A model generated the notes under the pieces. The model was not told where the DNA came from. It saw only the letters and a list, made by a program, of their open reading frames with translations, and did no database searches. From Eutreptiella sp. 'Long Island Sound 2002' (taxonomy: Eukaryota; Protista; Euglenida), in the NCBI GenBank assembly GCA_964036045.1, contig OZ038378.1, positions 79,422,001 through 79,486,000 on the forward strand: DNA of 64,000 nt. Direction: 5' to 3'. Position numbers and translations under genes: made by a program. Below, piece after piece: positions 4,782 to 55,212 of this stretch; position 1 is the stretch's first letter; each line of letters starts with the position of its first letter.

Positions 4782-4849
4782 TTGTAAATACAGTCGCACT
4801 GCTTTCACCACGTGTAAGTTGCACACATGCAGGCGTATCACAGTAAGGG

Positions 4850-5218
4850 GCAGCTCAAAAATCGAAGTTTTTGAAACTTTTTTTTTGATATTGTGATCAC
4901 TTAAAATGACCATCTAAGGTATGTAAAGCATGTTTTAGGCCGTATTTACATGACTTTCACCCCATTTGGGTATTGGGCGGGGGGGGGGGGGGGCTCCCAA
5001 GGGATTGGTACACAACTTGCGTATGCCTTTCCAACCTATGCAGCTCAAAAATTAAAGTTTTCGAACTTTATTTTTTTGATATTGTGATCACCTAAAATGA
5101 CCATCCAAGCTATGTAAAGCATATTTTAGCCTGTATTTATATAGTTTGCACCCTATTTAGGGTGTGTGTTGCCTGGGAAAGATTCTCTGCGAGGTGGACT
5201 TGCCGAAGGCAATAGAAT
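4850..5218 (+). mobile_element. 3' part of the asymmetric-TIR/hairpin element family (about 1.5 internal ~190-bp units plus the right end)
   Basis: CTCTGCGAGGTG at 5185-5196 is the reverse complement of left end CACCTCGCAGAG; hairpin TGCC-GAA-GGCA 5201-5211; ATAGAAT 5212-5218; internal units match 53845-54995. Confidence 0.8.
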
Positions 5219-6489
5219 TTTCACAATTCGACTTTTCGGAAACCCTTTTGTTGCCCCTAGGATGGGTTGGGGTGATCATTTGGTGACAATCTGGGTACTT
5301 GAGCGCCCATGGGGATCCACGTGATCCCCAACGCTTGGTGCAGAGACAAAATCCAAAATGGCACAATGGCACAATAAAGCAGGTACCCCAATACACCATC
5401 CCTCCCGCCATAACCCTCTCACCCCTCCGCACCCGAGTTGGCTTCAGTGTAGGCGAAGCAGCACAGATGCAACAGCACATCAACGACCACAGATGCAATA
5501 GCACATCTGATGCCGACAAGCCGAGATTTGCTTTGGTGCATGCAAAACTGCTTTGAAACCATGCACACGCGCAATATGCATTGTTATTCCAACTTCACAG
5601 CTTGTAAATCCCCCTAGCTGAACAAGAAACCAATACAAAATGACACATGCCCACTACAGCCCCCTGTGAAAACCATGGGCTACGGGAAAAATGTGATAAA
5701 AACCCCTACACGGGACAAAACAAAAACCTTCAGTCACCTAGTCCCGAAAACCCCCCTCCCAAATTTGGACGAAAAATGCAACACACCGCGATAAACAATC
5801 CCCACAGGGACGTTTTGGTCCATATGGGAGAGGGGGAAGTGTACCTTACCAAATGCACACCAAACAGTATTTTAGTGCAATCACATACCCAAACGTTGCT
5901 AGAGTTTCTACGAAATTTCACCAAACTATGGCACTTGCGGCATTGTCACCACACACCCACATATTGCTGTAGACTGCCATAAGCAGATAAATGCACCTCC
6001 CCCCTTTGCGCGGGCACCACCAAAGGCACAGAAAACCGTGGTTTCACCAGGTAGTGGCGCTTGCACAGGGGGGGGGGGGGGGTTGAATAGGCAAAATGGG
6101 ACATGGTTCGAAAAACAATGGCCTTCAGGTAGTGGTGCTTGCACAAGGGTGGTGCTTGCGCAAAGGGGAGGGCGTGGTAACTCATCGACACCAACTCGTA
6201 TGTTTCTCTGCCCATTGTGCTCCTATATGGTTCCCACCACAGGAAAGAGTCACCTCGTTGGTACACCACTTAGACTCAGCCATGCACGAAGGGCAAATGC
6301 ATGAAAAAATAGAAAAACTAGAAAGAATAGAAAAAGCTCATGGAATCCGGATCCCAAAACACCAGAGATCCACATCCGGTGTAGCGTTCCCTACCCTAAA
6401 GCCGGGGCACATCACTCCATACGTGGCCTCTCCACTCCCGCTACCTCATGTGGGACAGCCGCTCCCTGGGCAGCCCACTGGTCCACTTC

Positions 6490-9140
6490 ATGCATTGGCT
6501 CGCATCTGTGTGCCATGCACGCGCTCTGTGAAGCTCATCCGCGTGCCATGTGGGCACCCTGTGACTCGCATCTGTGTGCCACGCAGCCGCTCTGTGACTC
6601 GTATCTTTGTGCCATGCAGGCGCTTTGTGACTCGCATCTGTGCACCATGCACGCGCTCTGTGACTCACATCTGTGCACAATGCAGGCACTCTGTGACTTG
6701 TATTTGTGCGCCATGTAGGCGCTTTGGCACTTGCATCTGTGCGCCATGCAGGCGCTCTGTGACTCGCATATGTGTGCCATGTAGGCACTCTGTGACGCGC
6801 ATGAGTGTGCCATGCAGGCGCTCTATGACTCGAAACTGTGCGCCATGCAGGAGCTCTGTGAGTAGCATCTGTGCGCCAAGCAGGCACTCCGTGGAGCGCA
6901 TCCGTATGCCATGCAGGTGCTCTGTGAGCTGCATCTGTGCGCCATGCACGCGCTCTCTGACTTCCATCTGCGCGCCATGCACGGGCTCTGTGAAGCTCAT
7001 CCGTGTGCCATGTAGGCGCGCTGTGACTCGCATCTGTGCGCCATGCAGGCGCCCTGTGACTTGCATCTGTGAGCCATGCAGGCGCTCTTTGACTTGCATC
7101 CGCGTGCCATGCAGGCGTTCTGTGAAGCTGATCCGTGCGCCATGTGGGCGCTCTGTGAGGCGCCCTGTGACTCTCTTCCGTGGGCCATGCAGGCGCTCTG
7201 TGGCTCACATCTGTGCGCTATGCAGGCGCTCTGAGACTTGCATCTGTGTGGCATGCAAGCACTCTGTGACCCACTACTGTGCGCCATGTAGGCGCCCCGT
7301 GACTTGCATCTGTGTGCCTTGCATGCGCGCCATGCAGACGCGCTGTGAAGCGCAGGCGCTCTGTGACTCCCATCCGTTCGCCATGCAGGTGTTTTGTGAC
7401 TCACATATGTGCACCATGCACGCGCTCTAGGCGCTCTGTGAAGCGCATTTGTACGCCATGCAGGCGCTCTGTGACTCGTATCATCTGTGCGCAATGCAGG
7501 CGCTCTGTGCCATGCATCTATGCTCCATGCAGGCGCTCTGTGACTCGTATCTGTGCGCCATCCGGGCGCTCTGTGACGTGCATCTGTGCACTATGCAGGC
7601 GCTCTGTGACTCGCTTCTGTGCGCCATGCAGGCGCTCTGTGACTCACATCTGTGCGCAATGCAGGGGCTCTGTGAGTAGCATCCATGCTCCATGCAGGCG
7701 CTCTATGACTCTTATCTGTGTGCCATGCAGGCGATAGGTGACTCACATCTGCGTGCCATGAAAAGCGCTCTGTGACTCGCATCTATGTGCCATGCAGGCG
7801 CTCTGTGACTCGAAACTGTGCGCCATGCAGGAGCTCTGTGAGTAGCATCTGTGCCCCATGCAGGCGCTCCGTGGAGCGCATCCGTATGCCATGCAGGTGC
7901 TCTGTGAGTTGCATATGTGCGCCATGCACGCGCTCTATGACTTCCATCTGCGCGCCATGCACGGGCTCTGTGAAGCTCAATGGTGTGCCATGTAGGCGCC
8001 CTGTGACTCGCATCTGTGCGCCATGTAGGCGCTCTGTGACTCTTATCTGTGCGCAATGCAGGCGCTTTGTGAGTAGAATTTGTGCGCCATGCAGGCGCTC
8101 TGTGACTCCCATCTTTGCGCCATGCAGGCACTTTGTGACGTGCATCTGTGCACCATGCAGGCGCTCTGTGACTCGCTTCTGTGCGCCATGCAGGCGCTCT
8201 GTGACTTACATCTGTGCGCAATGCAGGGGCTCTGTGAGTAGCATCCATGCTCCATGCAGGCGCTATGTGACTCTTATCTGTGTGCCATGCAGGCGCTACG
8301 TGACTCACATCTGCGTGCCATGCAAAGCGCTCTGTGACTCGCATCTGTGTGCCATGCAGGCGGTCTGTGAGTAGCATTTGTGCCCCATGCAAGCGCTCTC
8401 TAGAGCGCATCCGTACGCCATGCAAGTGCTCTGTGAGTTGCATATGTGCGCCATGTAGGCGCTCTATGACTTGCATCTGCGTGCCATGCACGCGCTCTGT
8501 GAAGCTCAATGGTGTGCCATGTAGGCGCCCTGTGAAGCTCAATGGTGTGCCATGTAGGCGCTCTGTGACTCGCATCTGTGCACCTTGCAGGCGCTCTATG
8601 AGTAGAATTCGTGCGCCATGCAGGCGCTCTGTGACTCTTATCTGTGCGCCATGCAGGCGCTCTGTGACTCTTATCTGTGCGCCATGCAAGCGCTCTGTGA
8701 CTCGCATCTGTGCGCGATGCAGACAGGCGCTCTGTGAGTAGCGCATGTACGCCATGCAAGCGCTCTATGAGTAGCATTTGTGTGCCATGCAGGCGCTCTG
8801 TGAGTAGCATATGTGCCCCATGCAGGCGCTCTGTGACTCGCATCTGTGCGCCATGCAGACAGGCGCTCTGTGATTCGCATCTGTGCGCCATGTGCGCCAT
8901 GCAGGCGCTTTGTGACTGGCATCTATCTGCCATGCAGGTGCTCTGTGACCTGCAGCTATTCGCCATGCGGGCGCCCTGTGACTGGGACCCGTGCACCATG
9001 CAGGCGCTCTGTGACTCACCTCCGCGCGCCATGTAGGCGCTGTGTGACTTGCCTCTGTGCACCCTGCGGGCGCCCTGTGACTTGTATTTGTGCACCCTAC
9101 AGGCGCTCTGTGACTCGCATCTGTGCCCCATGCGGGTGGT
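6490..9140 (+). repeat. 33-bp minisatellite, consensus GCGCTCTGTGACTCGCATCTGTGCGCCATGCAG, with higher-order blocks
   Basis: Directly visible tandem units; translation gives 11-aa repeats (RSVTRICAPCR). Confidence 0.95.
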
Positions 9141-9149
9141 CTAGTCACC

Positions 9150-9790
9150 GAGCGCCGGCATGACCCACAGATGCGAGTCACAGAGTGCCTGCATAGCGCA
9201 CAGATGCGAGTCACAGAGCGCCTGCATGGCGCAAAGATATGAGTCACAGAGCGCCTGCAGGGCGCACAGGTGTGAGTGACACAGCGCCTATATGGCGCAC
9301 AAATGCGGGTCACGGGGCGCCTGCATGGCGCACAGATGCGAGTCACAGAGCGCCTGCATGGCGCACAGATGCAGGTCGCCCCGCGCCTGCGGGGCGCACA
9401 GGTGCGAGTCACGGTGCGCCTGCATAACACACCAGGGCGAGTCACGGCGCGCCTGTATGACGCACAGATGCGAGCCAAGGAGCACCTATGTTTGCAACTG
9501 CGTTGTTGTCACGGCATTTGGAGGTATCCACCCCTTCTTTCCTTGTTTATAGTCGTCCGAGAGGTGCACCTCGACCCTTGGGAGCCTTCCGGCTTGCCAT
9601 GCAGCAACCCTCCCTCGCTGGGGCCCTCTTGATCTGTGGAGGGGAGCGCCCTTGCCACACGGGGTTCATCCATCAGAGCCGGTCCTCTCGGCCATCCTGC
9701 GTGGTGCACAGATGCGAGTTGCAGAGCGCCTGCGTGGCGCATAGATTCGAGTCACAGAGCGCCTGCATGGCACACAAATGCGAGTCACAG
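9150..9790 (-). repeat. Inverted copies of the same 33-bp minisatellite (9150-9480 and 9700-9790)
   Basis: Units read CACAGATGCGAGTCACAGAGCGCCTGCATGGCG, the reverse complement of the upstream array. Confidence 0.9.
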
Positions 9791-10472
9791 TACCAGTAGA
9801 CTCATCGCGGATGGCATGGGCACTAAGGAATATGAACACTCTACTGTGTTCACCTTGCTTGGCACAGATTTTTGTGAGGACGTCATGGATGACTTCGGTC
9901 CGGACCTCATCCCCATCAAAAACTAAGGCTGAGCATATTTGTTGTTCTGCAAATGCATAAATCATTTTCTTATCATGCTTCACAAATCCACCATCTGCGC
10001 ATGAATCCTAATGGTAGAGGAAAGCAATAACAAGTCCCATTTTACCATCATACACAGCATCCATCAGCGCACGAACAGTCAAAACCTTTGGTGCTTTTCG
10101 AGGAGACAAGGCAGCACGAGCGAACTGCTGAAATGCGGGTGCATTTTTGGATGCTAGCAAAGCCAACACGTCAGCCGCAAGAACAATTCGTGCATTCTGG
10201 TTGGCACCACAAGGCAGGGATTGGGGTGCTGTGGATACTGCCACCCTCACATCCCGGCCAGTTTGGGGATCTTGACCAACAGGGGGCTGTAGCAAGTTGA
10301 TGGTCAATAGATCGAGATTCCGGGTCCATCGGCCCGGTAGCTGCGTCGCAGATCGGTCATTCAACCACTTCTCTGCATCACTCTGCCGCACATACTCCTT
10401 GCGGCCACTCGACGTCTGCACAAAAAACCACGGCAGGTCGTCGAATTCAGCAAACTTTTCATCACTTGACAT
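9790..10472 (-). pseudogene. Bro-N-like N-terminus fused to the N-terminal half of a caspase/metacaspase-like (C14) domain; in-frame TAG at 10008-10010; truncated by the minisatellite
   Basis: ORFs 10008-10472 and 9666-9983 are in the same frame. PWFFVQ..DAEKWL and IVLAADVLALLASKNAPAFQQF resemble Bro-N. GLVIAFLY..HDKKMIYAF..FDGDEVRTEVIHDVLTKICAKQGEHSRVFIFLSAHA resembles the C14 ALLIGINY..ND..T..NI..L..GD.LFFHYSGHG pattern. Confidence 0.5.
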
Positions 10473-13400
10473 TGATGCCTACCAATGAGTGGGCAATGAT
10501 GGTGAGACAGTACCTCTGACAGAGAATATCTAACGCAGATTGTGCTGCCAAAATCAAATTGGCGGGCGAGTGTAGAATGTTATAAACAAGAGAGCCACAC
10601 TCTCTCCTCGAAATGGGTACATTCCTATCCGTGGTAGGGAGTAACCCTCGTTCCATTTCGGCCCCATGACTTTCACTGTTAAATGAAGGGATGGATTTGC
10701 TTCGATTGTCCAAATAGTGAGCGCACTCAATTCATAACCATGTCGGGGCTTCGAAGGACACACATCACCCCTTAACATCATGGATTTTCATTCATGTGAA
10801 ACCGAATGTTTCGCGTTGGGTCTACGCAAGCCCCCCCTTCCCCCACCAAAACCCTATTTGTATGTAGTGCCATAATCCATGCAAGTAGAGCATCTTCATA
10901 TGGGCCATTATGACGTGAGCCCTTGTCAAGGCTTCATAGTTAAGTCCCAATGAATTGAATCATCGGTGGCGAACTCAGGATGAGGGTTTCTCAGTCTCAA
11001 GTAGACGTTTGCCAATAGCCACTAGTTGCCCGAGTTTGCCTTGGTAGGTTCCATACCTTGTTGCCGAAGGGCATGGTCAAAGTTGTTATGGTGGTGTGGT
11101 GTTTCCATTCAAACGCGAGATTCGTGTGCGAGAGTTTCATGTTGATTCCTCAAAGAGTTACTTGAGGTTTCCTTTAACACAAATGGACACAACGCACCAA
11201 ACAAAGCACATTGCTTTCGAGAATGGCTTGTCATTGGACCCAGCAGCAGGGGCTTTCAGAATATCAGGGCCTCCGGGGGGCAGGGCAGCCTGAAACATGC
11301 ATCACGTACAATTACCATATTGCGATGGTAATTTTGAAGCATCTACGGTGGGATGTAAAGATGTTCATCAAGCCACTGTCTTGGCCCTACTTTAGGTGGG
11401 TGGGTCATATCGACCAAAACATTAATAATCCGGGCGGCATCAACTTTCACAGCCCATCCCCGCCCAACACAGGCCAGCAAGCTGCACAATGATGCGCAAC
11501 CCCCTGCCCCGTCTTGTATCCGCCATGTGTAACGACCAGCAATGTGTTGCCCTATGCCCAGGGATGGGTAGAAAAGCGGCGGTCACCCTAGCTCGAGGTG
11601 GGGAATTGCTTGATCATCCACGACAACCGCAACTTCACCTTCACCGGCATTCCATTGCCATTGCACTGCCCATCATACAAAAATGATTACCAATGCTCAT
11701 GCACTGATGCAGCCAACTCCACGAGGACGACATTAACGGACGTCTCGCAACACCCGCGTGACTTTGTCACAAGAGTCCCTCTGTCAGGTGCCTTGCTGAA
11801 GGCAAAAGAATTTGGGTGAAGGGGGGGTGGGGGGTCCAGAGGGAGGGACGGGGTTCCGGTGCCTTCAGCACCCCAAAATCTTCCCAGCCTGGGGCTAATG
11901 GTGTTGTTGTGGCACAAAAATGCGGTGGAAAATGCGAAAAAATGCACAAAATGCGAATGGCATTTATCCCACGGCCAAAAACAGCATGAGAGCTAGCGAC
12001 ATTGGTACCGGAGGTTGTGAGCATGTACACTCCGGTAGGGCGCCCTTTCGGGGCAGGCGGGCCACAATCATCGAAAGAGGGGGTTTTGGGCAAGAAGCCA
12101 TGGTCTTGTGTTCTCGTCTGCAGCTGGCGGCGCCCACTGGCAGATCGCCATTCGCTGCCCTTCCCTTCCCTTTCCTTCAGTGAAGGTCCACCAAGCCGCT
12201 GTTTTGGTCCGCCGTTTCTGTTTCTCCATGGTGGCGGGTTGGGTCGACCAAAACATTAAGGATCCATACGGCAATACCCTTCACCTCCACGAGGTCACGT
12301 TCATGCTCATGGCGGAGTGCTTCCATCGCGTGTGTGGGTGAGCTGTGTAAACTCAGCACGACTGTCACCACTTCCCCCCATGTGTCACACGTTCACGGCT
12401 CAACAGGAGCGCCAACGGTGGTGCCCGGTCCAAGCTGCGCGACCATCCTCAACACCATCGGCACATGCTCAACTGTCCACCGCATGCCATACCCCCGGCG
12501 ATGCAGTGCTGCGGAGTCGTGGCGGGTACTCGCACTCTCGCTGTACTAGATCTTCTTCACTAGGAGCTCCACGTGAGTCGCGGTATCGTTAGCATGCTCT
12601 CGGCACGCTCGGCGCGTTCCACGCCCCAACATCGAAAGAGGGGGGCTGAGGGGCTCACCCCTTGTGGAGATACCTCAGCCAGCCGACAACAGGAGGTGTG
12701 CGCCGCAGCAATCCGCTACCTGTGTACAATGGACTATCTGTCATGCTTCTACAACTCCGGGCCCCATGACATCAGATCACGCAGTCCTAATGCCCGTAAA
12801 CCTCCCGTATTTTCTTGGCCCAACGACTGACAACCGTCACAACCCTCTGGAATCAGTGCGGCACCCCCCCACAGTGCATCACGTACAAATGCGGCGGGAT
12901 CGCAGGACGCACTGCAGTGCAAGCCGTGTCTTGAACACGGACGGGGGGATACACTGCCACACCCCCAACACAGACGAAAGGGAGGCCTACTCTTGCAGCG
13001 CCCTGCTGCTCCCTTAGGCACTGCTACGGAAAAAACACGTCATGATTGATGCTGCCGCATTCCAGAGCGGAGGGCTCTGACAAGCGTTCCACGCTGCATC
13101 CATTTCTCTTGTCGTTAAATCCGATGCATGTGAGGCAAGAGTGCACACGCCTCACAGTCGAGGGGTAGAGGGTAGCGCCAGCCATGTACATGTGCGGGGT
13201 ACGGCAAACCCCTCAGAGCCCCGCAAAGGGCGCCCGGAGCAATGGGGCGAATGCTGAGCCCCCCAACGCCTGCCGCACAAAGGTCTGTGCTTCAGATATT
13301 CCAGACACTTCGACCTCCCCCAATTGTTAAGGACAGGGCCGGTAGAGTGGGGGTGGGTCCCTTGGATTAGCCCGCCACCGCCACCAAATGCTAGATCTCT

Positions 13401-40873: not shown

Positions 40874-41594
40874 CACCTCGCAGAGGTTGTTAGATCAAAG
40901 CCACGCAGGCCCGTATATAGGGGAAAACGCCACATACCCCCCCCTTTTGGGCCTTTTTGGGCCTCTTCGCGTACCCTACCCCAAGGGGTTGAATTGTTAG
41001 TTTAACCCCACGTAAAATCATTATTTTGTCCAATAAACACATCCCCCAATGAGTGTTTGGTCCGGACCCATCCAGACCCCCCCCCCACTTGAAACCCACT
41101 TTTTGGGCTTTTGAGGGAGGGGGGGGGGGTCAAAAATGTCGAAGAAATGACCCCCATTTTGTTTGGTCGAAAATCATGAATCTTTTGGTTTTTTTCGATT
41201 TTGAGCCGAAAAAGTGTTTCCGGGTCCCGACTCCATGGGGTTTGTATGGGGCGGAGTGGGACGAGCACTCTGCGGTTTTATTATGCACTTTTCAGCCATT
41301 TTTGCGATGTTGGTGGTTTTGGCGACCTTGGTGACGCCGTGCTACCCACTCTGAGGGGTGTGAGTGGGGATGTTGTGACAGTATATGCCTATTAGGATAC
41401 GAAAGGACGTTTTTTGCAGTCTGTAGCCTTGCTGAGGGCGGGTCAAAACCCGTGCCAAAGATGCAAAATGACTGTTTCCACCAATAATGGCCTAGTGAAT
41501 GGGCCCGTGCACAACCTACTTGTGCAGTTTTTCACTTTGGACGGCTCAAAAATCGAAGTTTTGCAAACACATGTTTTTGATGTTGTGATCACCT
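40874..41594 (+). mobile_element. 5' portion of the asymmetric-TIR element family (3'-truncated)
   Basis: GAAT|CACCTCGCAGAGGTTGTTAGATCAAAG; body near-identical to 51106-51540 and 52450-52650. Confidence 0.85.
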
Positions 41595-49900: not shown

Positions 49901-50464
49901 TAAAAGCAAGGATCAAGTGCATATTGTTAATTAGTGGACCCATACTAGCTAACTTGGATGCCTGAATTTGTTGTCAAGCTACTTAAGTAGGTTTCTCTTC
50001 CGGCACACCACATGGCATGTTGCAGGGCATACCGTAGATGCTGCAGGTGTGAGTGTGGCACATGTACAAAAGTGTTGTCCAGAAGCCAATGGGCAGCACT
50101 CTGTCTAACGACATCAGATGGTGGATGGTGTCAACAGACTATGCTAAGCAGATAAGCGGATCTTCAACAGTGACTAATGACAGCCGTTGGCGGAGAACCG
50201 CAAGACGTTGGCGCGGTGAACCAACAGTAGATGATCGTTGACTATTGTTGTGTCGGTCAACAACTGGCGGCTGGTGGGTGGGTGCACTTGCATGTGGCGT
50301 ACATAGTGCTACGTCTTGAAGGAGTGTAGGCCAAGGAGGGCTGCCTGTTTCGGAAACCCCCAACCCCCTCCGGACCCCCCAAAAGTTCTGGTACCCGCCT
50401 TCGTTTTCCGGCGCCATTTGAGATTGGCGCCGGAAAATTGCCGGCGCCATAGGCGCCGAAGAAT

Positions 50465-51105
50465 CACCTCAAAGAGAGGTTGTTAGATCAAGCGCAGGCG
50501 CGGGCGTCGTATACCCCCCTTTTGGGGGGTCATTCGCGTAGCATACCCCAAGGCATGAATGATATTTGATGTCCAACCCCTTGTAACTCATTATTTTGCC
50601 CAATAAGACAATCCCCCAATGGACTTTTTGATTCTGAGGCCTCTATCCCCTGAAACTGGATATCACTTTTTTGAGGGGGGGTTGGGGGTCAAAGGTTTGT
50701 GCCCAGAAGGCTTCAAGCAGTGGGCACAATAAGTACTGCCAGAATAAGCAGCGGCTCAACAGTAATGCCGCCGACCGCGAACTTTTAGGTCAGCGCTCCG
50801 ATTCCTAGGGCCGACTTGTCAGCCCCGCCCCGGCGGTCGGCCGACCGGGGTTCGAACCGCCGACCCACACAGCTGCGGCCGAGTGCTTTACCACTCGACC
50901 GCTGTGCGTTCTGCAGTAGTTGTTCTCCCAACTGCTTGAAGCTGAGTCTCCCACTGGAAAAAAACCGACTGTGTGTTTCTGTCTGCCTGCCTGCTTGCCC
51001 GACTGACTGTCTGACTGACTGCTGGCCTGACTGCTGGCCTGACTAACTGACTGATTCGCTGACTGTCAGCCTCTCTTCGAGATGCACTGCCAAAGGCAAT
51101 AGAAT
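50465..51105 (+). mobile_element. 641-bp complete member of a variant subfamily of the asymmetric-TIR/hairpin element
   Basis: Left CACCTCAAAGAGAGG (50465-50479) pairs with CCTCTCTTCGAGATG (51070-51084) at 13/15; hairpin TGCC-AAA-GGCA 51088-51098; ATAGAAT end. Confidence 0.75.
50836..50907 (-). other. tRNA-derived (SINE-head-like) Pol III A/B-box sequence; not an intact tRNA
   Basis: Minus strand GGTCGAGTGGTAAAGC (A-box-like) and GGTTCGAACCC (B box) at tRNA spacing; T-stem mispaired. Confidence 0.6.
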
Positions 51106-52814
51106 CACCTCGCAGAGGTTGTTAGATCAAAGTCAGGCAGGCGTACATAGGGGAAAATGCCACATACCCCCCCCCCTTTTGGGCCTTTTTGGGCCTCTTC
51201 GCGTACCCTACCCCAAGGGGTTGAATTGTTTGTTTAGCCCCTTGTAAAATCATTATTTTGTCCAATAAACACATCCCCCAATGAGTTTTTGGTCCGGACC
51301 CATCCAGACCCCCCCCCCCACTTGAAACCCACTTTTTGGGCTTTTGAGGGAGGGGGGGGGGGGTCAAAAATGTCGAAGAAATGACCCCCATTTTGTTTGG
51401 TCGAAAATCATGAATCTTTTGGGTTTTTTTCGATTTTGAGCCGAAAAAGTGTTTCCGGGTCCCGACTCCATGGGGTTTGTATGGGGCGGAGTGGGACGAG
51501 CACTCTGCGGTTTTATTATGCACTTTTCAGCCATTTTTACGATGTACACAACCTGCTTATGCAGCTTTTCACCCTGGGCAGCTCAAAAATCAAAGTTCTC
51601 GAGACTCATTTTTTTTGATACCGTAATCACCTAAAATGACCATCCAAGGCATGTAAACGATGTTTTAGGCCATATTCATGTGTTTTTCACCCTATTTGGG
51701 TACTGGGGCGCGGGGGGGGGGGGGGGGGCTCCCAAGGGAATGGTACACAACCTGCTTATGCAGTTTTTCTGACCAGACAACTCAAAAACCCAAGTCGCCG
51801 AAACTCAATTTTTTGATCCTCTGATCACCTAAAAAATGACCATCCAAGCTATGTAAACCATGTTTTGGGCCGTATTCATGTGTTTTTCACCCTATTTGCG
51901 ATTGGGCGCGGGGGGGGGGGGTCAAACGGGATTGGTACATAGCCTATACAGCTCTAAATTCCAAGTTTTTGAAACTTTTTTTTGATATCACCTAAAATGA
52001 CCATCCAAGATATGTAAAGCCAGGCAGGCGTATATAGGGGAAAATGCCACATACCCCCCCATTTTGGCCTTTTTGGGGCTATTCGCGTACCCTACCCCAA
52101 GGGGTTGAATTGTTTGTTTAGCCCCTTGTAAAATCATTATTTTGTCCAATAAACGCATCCCCCAATGAGTTTTTGGTCCGGACCCATCCAGACCCCCCCC
52201 CCCACTTGAAACCCACTTTTTTGAGGTTTTGAGGGAGGTGGGGGGGGGGTGGGGGGGGGTCAAAAATGTCACAAAAATGACCCCCTTTTTTTTGGGTCGA
52301 AAATCATGAATCTCTTGGTTTTTTTCGATTTTGAGCCGAAAAAGTGTTTCCAGGTCCCAACTCCATGGGGCTTGTATGGGGCGGAGTGGGACGAGCGCCA
52401 ATGCAGTTTATGTACTTTTCAACCATTTTTGCCATGTTGGCGGTGTTGGCGACCTCAGTGACCCAGTGGTACCCACTCTGGGGGGTGTGAGTGGGGATGT
52501 TGTGACAGTATATGCCTACTAGGATACGAAAGGACATTTTTTGCAATCTCTAGCCTTGCTGAGAGCCGGTCACAACCCGTGCCAAGGACGCGAAATAACT
52601 GATTCCACCAATAATGGCCTAGTGAATGGGCCGGTACACAACCTGCTGATGCAATTTTTCACCCTGGACAGCTCAAAAATCGAACTTTTCGAATATTGTT
52701 TTTTTGATATTGTGACCACTCAATATGAGCATCCAAGGTATGTAAAGCATGTTTTAGCCCGTATTTACGTGTTTTTCACCCTATTTGGGTATTAGGTTCA
52801 GGGGGGGGGGGGGG

Positions 52815-53840
52815 CTGATAGTATCACCGAGTGTCAAGTCCGTTGTATGACAGGCAATCTGTATGCCCTGGGTGTAGCCATGGAACGCCGTGACGGCCAC
52901 GGAGAAATCTATGTGCATCCTTCGGCGATGACACCAGATTGGCGTTTAAAACAGGGAGCCCCACTGCAGTCCGCGTGGGCTGTGACGTTAGCAGACCTTT
53001 TCACAGGCGTGTTGATGAACTACCGTGTTTTCCTCACCACACGGGCTGAATTTCTGCTGTCTGCGGCAGCGTGGTTGCAAATCAGTATGTTATGCAGTCA
53101 CAATCGTGCAGTGGCTGTCCGAGCATGCCAAAAATCTATACATAGACTGTTGAGTTACACACCACACGATGGCGTGTTGAGCCAACGATGGATCACGTAC
53201 ATCTCTCATGAAATGCCTTGTAGCAAGATCACCGTACAATGCAAGCTATGGCAATGGCTGCGTGTTTATGCACAGTGGCACAACAACCAGTATGCTTCCT
53301 GGCACATACCCCACCATGGTCCCCATACAGATTGGTGTGGTGACCGGTGCTCCTGTTTTCATGCGTGCATGAGCCCCCCACCGGGGGGCGGGGGAGGAGG
53401 GGATCTGTTTGACGTTTTGAGACCCGAAGTATGTCCAAGAGACACCAATGTCGAATGTCCTGCAGTGCATCCGGGTAGTGAGCAATCATCCCATGTTTGA
53501 TCGCAGTCCTCACTTGACAGAGGGGATGTTGTCTGAACTACACCACAGTACGACAATGGTCTGATTTCAACGGTTCATAGCATGGCTGGCCCAGTCTGAG
53601 CGGGCATGCACGTCGTGCATTCGTCATGTGTGGCTGGCCCAGTCTGAGCGGGCAACAGTGCTTATTGCTGTGCAGGCCTGAGTGTTCACAATTCTGCAAC
53701 AGACTTTGGTGAAAGGCGCCTAGGGCCGGTCGCTCCGGTCCGTGATCAGCTTTGATCTCTTTTCTTTCGCTGTGCATGCTGGTGCCTGCGCAATCTCCTT
53801 GATTGCAATCATCACTTGACACAACCACGTGTCACCGCAC
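52815..53840 (+). other. 1026-bp insert in the G-run of a 197-bp unit, with a 217-aa ORF (52847-53500) of unknown nature
   Basis: Flanked by G14 and G6; the repeat unit resumes exactly after it; no recognised motif. Confidence 0.55.
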
Positions 53841-53844
53841 GGGG

Positions 53845-54995
53845 GGCTCCCAAGGGATTGGTACACAACCTGCTTATGTAGTTTTTCACTCTGGACAGCT
53901 CAAAAATCGAAGTTTTCGAATATTGTGTTTATGATATTGTGACCACTCAATATGAGCATCCAAGGTATGTAAAGCATGTTTTAGGCTGTATTTACCTGTT
54001 TTTCACCCTATTTGGGTATTAGGTTCAGGGGGGAGGGGGGGGTCTCCCAAAGGATTGGTACACAACCTGCTTATGTAGTTTTTCACTCTGGTCAGCTCAA
54101 AAATTGAAGTTTTCGAAACTTGTGTTTATGATATTGTGACCACTCAATATGAGCATCCAAGGTATGTAAAGCATGTTTTAGCCCGTATTTACGTGTTTTT
54201 CACCCTATTTGGGTATTAGGTTCAGGGGGGAGGGGGGGGTCTCCCAAGGGATTGGTACACAACCTGCTTATGCAATTTTTCACTCTGGACAGCTCAAAAA
54301 TCCAAGTTTTCGAATATTGTGTTTATGATATTGTGATCACCTAAAATGACCATCCAAGGTATGTAAAGCATGTTTTAGCCCGTATTTACGTGTTTTTCAC
54401 CCTATTTGGGGATTAGGTCCAGGGGCGGGGGGATCTCCCAAGGGATTGGTACACAACCTGCTTGTGTAGTTTTTCACTCTGGACAGCTCAAAAATCGAAG
54501 TTTTCGAAACTTGTGTTTATGATATTGTGACCACTCAATATGAGCATCCAAGGTATGTAAAGCATGTTTTAGCCCGTATTTACGTGTTTTTCACCCTATT
54601 TGGGTATTAGGTTCAGGGGGGAGGGGGGGGTCTCCCAAGAGATTGGTACACAACCTGCTTATGCAATTTTTCACTCTAGACAGCTCAAAAATCGAAGTTT
54701 TCGAAACTTGTTTTTCTGATATTGTGATCACCTAAAATGACCATCCAAGCTATGTAAAGCATGTTTTAGGCTGTATTTTCCTGTTTTTCACTCTATTTGG
54801 GTATTAGCTCCGGGGGGGGGGGGGGGGGCTCCCAAGGGATTGGTACACAACCTGCTTATGCTGTTTTTTACCCTGGCCAGCTCAAAAATCGAAGTTTTCG
54901 AAACTTATTTTTTTGATATCGTGATCACCTAAAATGATCATCCACAATATGTGAAGCATGTTTTAGCCCGTATTTATGTAGTTTTTACCCTATTT
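53845..54995 (+). repeat. ~197-bp tandem array (6 units; more at 51545-52015 and 52640-52814)
   Basis: ATTGGTACAC recurs at 53857, 54054, 54251, 54445, 54642 and 54839. Confidence 0.95.
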
Positions 54996-55212
54996 AGGGT
55001 GTGTGTGGCTTGGGGTAGATTCTCTGCGATGTGGGCTTGCCGAAGGCAATAGAATTTCAGTTTTCTCTAGAGGACAATTTTACTGACGTGGGTGGGTGGG
55101 TGGGTTGGCTAGAGCTGGCCAGGGCTGCCCTCATCCCGTTGTTCAGCAGTGCCCTGTTCCCAATGCTTTAAGGGGACATGGGATTGCGACGTGATATGCA
55201 TCTCCTTCGCAG

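Follow-up and report, generated by a model that had tools for sequence, protein, structure and literature searches.

The 64,000-nucleotide stretch of DNA analysed here (hereafter the window), which corresponds to C1:79,422,001-79,486,000 in the 2.28-Gb, 2,317-contig assembly of the euglenid Eutreptiella sp. 'Long Island Sound 2002', contains at positions 50465-55055 two repeated elements joined head to tail, and it raises the question of the kind of transposon to which they belong. A sequence-only reading of the window had proposed an undescribed family dependent on an HUH enzyme and specific for the tetranucleotide GAAT. We conclude that the pair very probably consists of non-autonomous rolling-circle transposons of the Helitron2/HLE2 type (Helentron-like, HINE-like), both members of one large family. 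The structural part of the earlier proposal is borne out, the asymmetric repeats, 3' stem-loop, internal tandem repeats and tandem insertions of a non-autonomous HUH-type element with Helentron/Helitron2-like structure all matching published definitions. The family fits an already described kind rather than an undescribed one, no new kind of mobile element is revealed, and the proposed GAAT specificity was abandoned on the evidence of the insertion sites given below.

The two elements, referred to as A and B, abut exactly (51105/51106) and their anatomy forms the basis of the analysis. Their features are listed below in window coordinates, with tandem repeats as called by TRF.

50461-50464, plus strand: GAAT, left flank of the dimer, a host-derived target half (RAAT^) lying outside the element
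50465-51105, plus strand: element A, a complete subfamily-1 copy of 641 bp (family consensus about 615 bp)
50465-50482, plus strand: 5' asymmetric inverted repeat of A, CACCTCAAAGAGAGGTTG, self-folding through ACCTC/GAGGT (fold -3.6 kcal/mol)
50770-50905 (approximate), no strand assigned: tRNA-derived remnants of A with GGTTCGAA-type T-arm boxes, placed from the sequence and the consensus
50979-51065, plus strand: CTGA-rich microsatellite of A (TRF)
51070-51084, plus strand: 3' asymmetric inverted repeat of A, CCTCTCTTCGAGATG, 21 nt from the 3' end
51088-51098, plus strand: 3' hairpin of A, TGCC-AAA-GGCA
51099-51105, plus strand: 3' tail of A, ATAGAAT, adjoining the first base of B
51106-55055, plus strand: element B, an internally rearranged subfamily-2 copy of 3,950 bp
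51106-51117, plus strand: 5' asymmetric inverted repeat of B, CACCTCGCAGAG, with the 5' hairpin ACCTC-GCA-GAGGT
51106-51545, plus strand: left arm of subfamily 2 in B, 440 bp, 96% identity to a truncated copy at 40874-41310
51544-51921, plus strand: two units of the internal repeat of about 200 bp in B (TRF, 200-bp unit, 1.9 copies)
52016-52437, plus strand: second copy of the left arm in B, 89% identical, lacking the first 23 nt and hence the 5' inverted repeat
52815-53840, plus strand: about 1 kb of unrelated DNA in B, with a 217-amino-acid open reading frame at 52847-53500
53841-55000, plus strand: central tandem array of B (TRF, 197-bp unit, 5.9 copies, 90% matches)
55022-55033, plus strand: 3' asymmetric inverted repeat of B, CTCTGCGATGTG, differing at one position from the family sequence CTCTGCGAGGTG, 22 nt from the end
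55038-55048, plus strand: 3' hairpin of B, TGCC-GAA-GGCA, the stem extending to TTGCC/GGCAA
55049-55055, plus strand: 3' tail of B, ATAGAAT, followed by the host flank TTCAG

The ends of the family are located where the sequence-only reading had placed them. Left ends of the form CACCTC..GGTTGTTAGATCAA start at 40874, 50465 and 51106, and right ends composed of the reverse complement of the left 12-15 nt, 3 or 4 further nucleotides, TGCC(G/A)AAGGCA and ATAGAAT stop at 5218, 51105 and 55055. The motif TGCC(G/A)AAGGCAATAGAAT terminates at these same three positions of the window, in which a fourth, degenerate right end was also detected at 11811. Dinucleotide-preserving shuffles of the window, used to set the chance level, gave an expectation of 0 matches for the left- or right-end motifs. 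The ends and their 3' hairpin, the correspondence between the two inverted-repeat halves and the head-to-tail arrangement are genuine, far above chance. In addition to the window, sixty 3-kb loci around family ends elsewhere in the genome (numbered with the prefix L) were sampled. The element follows a four-part plan: a self-folding 5' repeat (T)CACCTC..GAGG, its 3' complement, the hairpin TGCC-GAA-GGCA and the tail ATAGAAT.

The 5' inverted repeat begins at base 1 of the element (base 2 if an ambiguous T is counted) and is 12 bp long in subfamily 2 (CACCTCGCAGAG), 18 bp in the subfamily-1 consensus and 14 bp in subfamily 3. Its 3' partner ends 21-22 nt before the terminus and is followed by the spacer of 3-4 nt, the hairpin and ATAGAAT; these terminal 22 nt of the right end show strict conservation, and nothing at the left end corresponds to them. 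The minimum-energy folds of the 5' end, ACCTC-GCA-GAGGT and ACCTC-AAAGA-GAGGT, have short stems and modest energies. Their stem CCTC/GAGG is invariant, the subfamilies varying in the loop, and the 3' repeat mirrors the loop bases.

The genome-wide search for both termini, a check advised by the sequence-only reading, retrieved thousands of copies of each: 14,212 matches to an 18-mer of the right end with at most one mismatch, and 6,179 matches to the subfamily-2 left end (0 in the control in both cases). The sixty terminus loci and the window allowed three subfamilies to be distinguished.

Subfamily 1: about 615 bp; left end CACCTCGAAGAGAGGTTG; right end before the hairpin CAACCTCTCTTCGAGGTG-CAC; 5' and 3' repeats of the consensus complementary at 18/18 positions
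Subfamily 2: 0.8 to >3.9 kb; left end CACCTCGCAGAG; right end before the hairpin CTCTGCGAGGTG-GACT
Subfamily 3: left end CACCTCGAAGAGGG; right end before the hairpin CCCCTCTTCGAGGTG-CC(T/C)

Differences between the three subfamilies are matched at the two ends (GCAGAG/CTCTGC, GAAGAGAG/CTCTCTTC and GAAGAG/CTCTTC), and the left type equals the right type in all 13 complete copies from other loci, which bears out the earlier claim that variant subfamilies change both repeat halves together. Such compensatory changes could also reflect descent from different master copies. The copy with AAAGAG/CTCTTC in the window is a mutated member of subfamily 1. Nine complete subfamily-1 copies of 607-641 bp share a mean pairwise identity of 82.5% (76-92%), indicating that the family is not very young. 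The right-end variant represented at 11811 is a low-copy one, with 44 genome matches at up to three mismatches.

The insertion site was determined from the flanks of free ends (53 left, 37 right) and from empty sites. All three left ends of the window are preceded by GAAT, as reported, but this does not hold generally: the four nucleotides before free left ends are AAAT in 41 of 53 cases, GAAT in six and CAAT in one. Over positions -4 to -1 the consensus base is found 43 (A), 52 (A), 52 (A) and 51 (T) times out of 53, with AAT at -3 to -1 in 51/53. In the genome as a whole, exact matches to the subfamily-2 left end follow AAAT in 2,350 cases and GAAT in 1,352, about 900 of the latter being head-to-tail junctions. 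On the other side, T occupies position +1 in 35/37 free right flanks, +2 in 33/37 and +3 in 20/37, so that the flank opens with TT in 31 and with TTT in 20 of them; the TTCA reported after both free right ends of the window is only an instance of this general TT(T) flank.

Comparison of filled and empty sites gave a direct view of the boundary. The joined flanks of an 859-bp copy (L035), CAAAAT[...]TGCTG, match three uninterrupted paralogues reading CAAAAT^TGCTG in a gap-free alignment over 80 nt. A 1,449-bp copy in L046 gave the same result, and two copies lodged in internal repeats of the family itself are in agreement to within a single base in a homopolymer run. The gap-free alignments indicate that the element enters between T and T and leaves no scar, one AAT being supplied by the host; only one AAT is gained per insertion, and the AAT on the left is therefore host DNA. 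The target is AAAT^T(T), equally AAA^TTT, without duplication. On the right, the terminal GAAT, its G included, is element sequence and forms the 3' terminus, so that GAAT is neither duplicated nor the target, both possibilities being ruled out by the flank counts and the empty sites. Because the host AAT is identical to the last three bases of the element, the cut can be placed at four equivalent positions: under the usual T^T convention, the element CACCTC...ATAGAAT lies in AAAT^TT, and one base to the left TCACCTC...ATAGAA lies in AAA^TTT.

This anatomy corresponds closely to that described for Helitron2 elements, in which a 5' hairpin is built from a 5' repeat at 0-2 bp from the end, the 3' repeat directly precedes the 3' hairpin at a distance of 20-30 bp from the end, related elements show compensatory changes, and a 5' T occurs (Bao & Jurka 2013, PMC3627910). 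The Helentron-derived HINEs and DINE-1 insert within TT and combine inverted repeats in subterminal position with a 3' stem-loop and a centre of microsatellite or tandem repeats (Thomas et al. 2014, PMC4067079), and HELIANO recognises HLE2 by a T-T site with terminal inverted repeats and a stem-loop (PMC11417382). The euglenid family displays the position of the 5' repeat, the 5' hairpin, the association of 3' repeat and hairpin, the compensatory ends, and T^T insertion without duplication, subject in this last case to the 3-nt boundary ambiguity (AAT). It also displays the central repeats of HINEs, as the 197-bp unit in 5.9 copies, the 200-bp unit in 1.9 copies and the CTGA-rich microsatellite.

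Among non-autonomous Helitron2 elements, the Helitron-1N_CQu pair and CRe-1/2/3 of Chlamydomonas resemble the present family in their asymmetric repeats, 5' hairpin, 3' repeat next to the hairpin, compensatory changes and possible 5' T. The family differs from them by its occurrence in a euglenid and by a target extended to AAAT^T(T), and the variable target-site duplications of CRe-1/2/3 (PMC3627910) were not seen. The likeness to HINEs and DINE-1 (PMC4067079; HLE2 according to PMC11417382) concerns the subterminal repeats, the stem-loop, TT insertion in T-rich DNA and a very high copy number, as well as the presence of central repeats, which can account for half of the element; by contrast, the 5' repeat lies at the very end here and 2-4 nt inside in HINEs, and the 3' repeat lies 21-22 nt from the end as opposed to 38-60 nt in mite HINEs. 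Canonical Helitrons (Helitron1/HLE1) share scar-free oriented insertion, a 3' hairpin near the end and head-to-tail arrays, and the boundary moved one base to the left even gives a 5'-TC after A, but 5'-TC and A^T hold under only one of the four equivalent placements. Helitron1 was rejected as the class of the family, whose 3' end is ATAGAAT or ATAGAA and not CTRR, and which has the asymmetric inverted repeats and 5' hairpin that Helitron1 lacks.

A full-text literature search returned no description of Helitrons in Euglena, only incidental co-mentions, and euglenids are not mentioned in the HELIANO survey paper (PMC11417382). With the present classification, repeat copies numbering in the tens of thousands in this Euglena-like genome of 2.3 Gb fall under Helitron2/HLE2, with a precise target rule, AAAT^T(T), usable for annotation, and the three subfamilies with co-changed ends constitute a natural test of the pairing of 5' and 3' repeats as a replication stop.

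RAAT stands directly 5' of three junctions, namely the left one (AAAT^CACC), the right one (GAAT^TT) and the empty target (AAAT^T), an arrangement in keeping with HUH enzymes, which cut single strands beside hairpins. By analogy, a RepHel protein (HUH Y2 plus PIF1 helicase) supplied in trans would nick a single strand just after RAAT at all three places, first at the left junction, from which the element strand would be unwound, peeled off and copied. The process would stop where the 3' repeat paired with the 5' repeat, together with the hairpin, presents GAAT^, and the strand would then be joined into an AAAT^T target without duplication. Every insertion leaves a new RAAT^TT at its 3' junction, where a further copy can land exactly, and this recreated site accounts for the mixed dimer of the window, a subfamily-1 element followed by a subfamily-2 element.

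This dimer had been described as two elements sharing one GAAT. Two complete elements simply abut, the earlier reading having assigned GAAT to the left end. The exact junction GCCGAAGGCAATAGAAT/CACCTCG(A/C)AGAG, broken after GCCGAAGGCAATAGAAT, occurs 906 times in the genome, often in same-strand arrays with an irregular spacing of 1.0-4.6 kb. Arrays of the family are present, for example, at C1:109971861-109981432 and C2:3067288-3071030. The downstream partner belongs to subfamily 2 in 99 of 100 junctions among the matches listed, and 687 of the 906 exact joins link subfamily 2 to subfamily 2. An unbiased sample of right ends contained only five tandem junctions, all after subfamily-2 right ends, and no left end following a subfamily-1 or subfamily-3 right end. 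Being mixed, the dimer of the window is not a concatemer of one copy and is best explained by a subfamily-2 element landing in the GAAT^TT made by a subfamily-1 element. The excess of like-with-like joins suggests that many of the other arrays have another origin, such as read-through multimers, local reinsertion or unequal crossing-over. Beyond serial hits on the recreated target, we tentatively raise the possibility, on balance rather an unlikely one, that the arrays are rolling-circle read-through multimers formed by a euglenid RepHel nicking after RAAT. It is raised by the predominance of joins within subfamily 2 when an identical GAAT^TT site is available at the right ends of subfamilies 1 and 3. 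If correct, it would make this family a tractable natural case of a Helitron2 element becoming satellite DNA, with a predictable nick-site rule. The approximately 900 exact junctions are in any case useful for studying how such elements seed tandem arrays.

Candidate partner enzymes are abundant in the genome. The Helitron_like_N profile (proteins were searched with Pfam profiles) gave 863 candidate genome matches, all 150 of those scored passed the family cut-off, and many lie in open frames of 1,400-2,600 amino acids. The 30 best loci, sampled over 3.5 kb each, encode Helitron_like_N and the beginning of PIF1 and fall into three clusters with a mutual identity of about 50%. In one of these clusters, intact RepHel genes are repeated in the same orientation about 12-15 kb apart (G000, C11:29.05-29.24, C2:47.28-47.29, C2:71.50-71.56 and C6:9.80-9.82 Mb), a spacing which suggests that autonomous Helitron-like elements are also organised in arrays; none of these RepHel arrays shows the exact tandem junction of the family.

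Several observations weigh against the assignment to Helitron2/HLE2. Besides being short, the hairpins have fold energies that do not by themselves reach significance (z -0.4 to -2.3). Rolling-circle transposition is deduced from anatomy only, and an autonomous copy with the ends of the family was not found. The 30 RepHel loci contain neither terminus motif and have no nucleotide similarity to the family in blastn comparisons, and along C1:0-80 Mb all nine RepHel matches are more than 20 kb away from any strict subfamily-2 left end. A tblastn search with the open reading frames of the RepHel loci against the sixty terminus loci and the window gave no match, and no co-location was observed between the listed RepHel matches and the listed left ends, tandem junctions or variant right ends.

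Four other explanations were weighed against this assignment, two of which keep an HUH enzyme. A Replitron-like or other helicase-less Rep element, in which AAT would be a short direct terminal repeat and mobility would depend on a Y1 Rep and host replication, accommodates the AAT found at both the left flank and the right terminus. Replitrons are eukaryotic HUH transposons with short direct terminal repeats, a right-end palindrome and mostly no target-site duplication (Craig 2023, PMC10288648). We nonetheless consider this origin highly unlikely: the empty sites attribute the left AAT to the host and show a gain of one AAT per insertion, asymmetric inverted repeats are not a Replitron feature (PMC10288648), neither fuzzy right ends nor variable duplications were seen, and RepHel genes, with the helicase that the Y1 Rep of Replitrons lacks, are abundant in this genome. 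A new HUH family separate from Helitron2/Helentron, targeting and ending in GAAT in the way that IS91 targets a tetranucleotide, would explain why the three left ends of the window are preceded by GAAT, why right ends finish in it and why RAAT is found at both cleavage junctions genome-wide. IS91/ISCR and IS200/IS605 do share with the present family a short sequence (here RAAT) at cleavage points beside hairpins and the lack of duplication, but they are bacterial families with a different terminal architecture. Since AAAT clearly outnumbers GAAT at free left ends (41/53 against 6/53) and in the genome (2,350 against 1,352, of which about 900 are tandem), empty sites carry AAAT, and all structural hallmarks fit the described Helitron2 kind, such a family has very little probability. 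The genome also has no match to the IS91-type Y2_Tnp profile, an absence that is only weakly supported because the control genomes were silent too.

The remaining two explanations dispense with HUH chemistry. Integration by a Crypton-like tyrosine recombinase, through a circle with the junction ATAGAAT/CACCTC and a shared AAT core, would place the same three nucleotides on either side of the element, as observed, and the tandem junction is identical to the predicted circle junction. Three nucleotides are, however, a very short core for a tyrosine recombinase, the combination of hairpin and asymmetric repeats is a signature of single-strand HUH transposition (PMC4067079, PMC3627910), and no recombinase was seen in the sixty terminus loci or the window, where no dedicated search was run; we regard this route as even more improbable than the two preceding ones. 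Least probable of all, to the point of being nearly negligible, is an ordinary cut-and-paste miniature inverted-repeat transposable element mobilised by a DDE transposase with a 3-bp target-site duplication, notwithstanding inverted repeats of 12-18 bp and an AAT on each side. It conflicts with the right repeat lying 21-22 nt inside, the conserved terminal 22 nt that the left end lacks, the oriented head-to-tail arrays and the gap-free empty sites, the AAT beyond the host copy being explained by the invariant ATAGAAT terminus. More generally, the ends pair consistently, the inverted repeats are asymmetric and insertion produces no target-site duplication, the opposite of the signs that the sequence-only reading had named as refuting its proposal. 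The DDE candidate was rejected on the subterminal right repeat and the absence of duplication beyond the ambiguous AAT.

The interior of the elements differs between subfamilies. In the subfamily-1 consensus, two tRNA-derived remnants with GGTTCGAA T-arm boxes point towards each other, and ARAGORN, at a relaxed threshold, called a tRNA-Trp(CCA) in one of the nine subfamily-1 copies; the tRNA and Rfam scans called no tRNA in the window and nothing meaningful in the region. Element B is rearranged internally, its second left-arm copy restarting at base 24 directly after a 197-bp repeat unit. The unrelated segment of about 1 kb in B (52815-53840) may stem from capture of host DNA or from a nested element; its 217-amino-acid open reading frame had no Pfam match, and the other open reading frames of the window gave nothing relevant.

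The window contains three other pieces of the family.

40874-41594, plus strand: 5' portion of a further subfamily-2 copy with its left end, truncated beyond 41594, flank CTGAAT
4848-5218, plus strand: 3' part of another subfamily-2 copy with repeats, 3' repeat, hairpin and ATAGAAT, flank TTTCAC
11779-11811, plus strand: degenerate subfamily-3-like right end CCTCTGTCAGGTG-CCT-TGCTGAAGGCA-AAAGAAT, flank TTG

The last of these closes a 6.5-kb unit (5325-11811) of which copies 98-99% identical are present at three places on contig C6, and which contains a 444-amino-acid open reading frame, a repeat-rich open reading frame that has an Spt5-CTD-like match, and, in its interior, repeats of about 345 bp. 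No left end for this right-end variant was found in the window, and the left border of the unit has no Helitron2 features. A relative that carries cargo and has lost its 5' part is one possible origin of the unit, a segmental duplication another.

Insertions at one and the same position of another internal repeat, ..GTTTAGTGACACCTGCAAGATTTCCAAAAT^TCGACTTTTTCGGAAACCC.., were observed in L056, L036 and L020 and at 5219-5300 of the window. The repeat concerned belongs to subfamily-3-type elements, and the many insertions at the same position of the internal repeat of relatives indicate that the family preferentially hits its own relatives. In L042 (G000:C1:1776556-1776608), two subfamily-2 left ends face each other head to head with only AAT/ATT between them (..CTCTGCGAGGTG AAT CACCTCGCAGAG..), forming a long perfect palindrome within a complex array at C1:1.766-1.778 Mb. 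Apart from this family, the Euglena gracilis spliced-leader 24-mer has 5,458 dispersed chromosomal matches (0 for the reversed control), which points to Euglena itself or a very near relative as host; the number is far in excess of what spliced-leader RNA gene arrays alone would give and is compatible with many retrocopied mRNAs.

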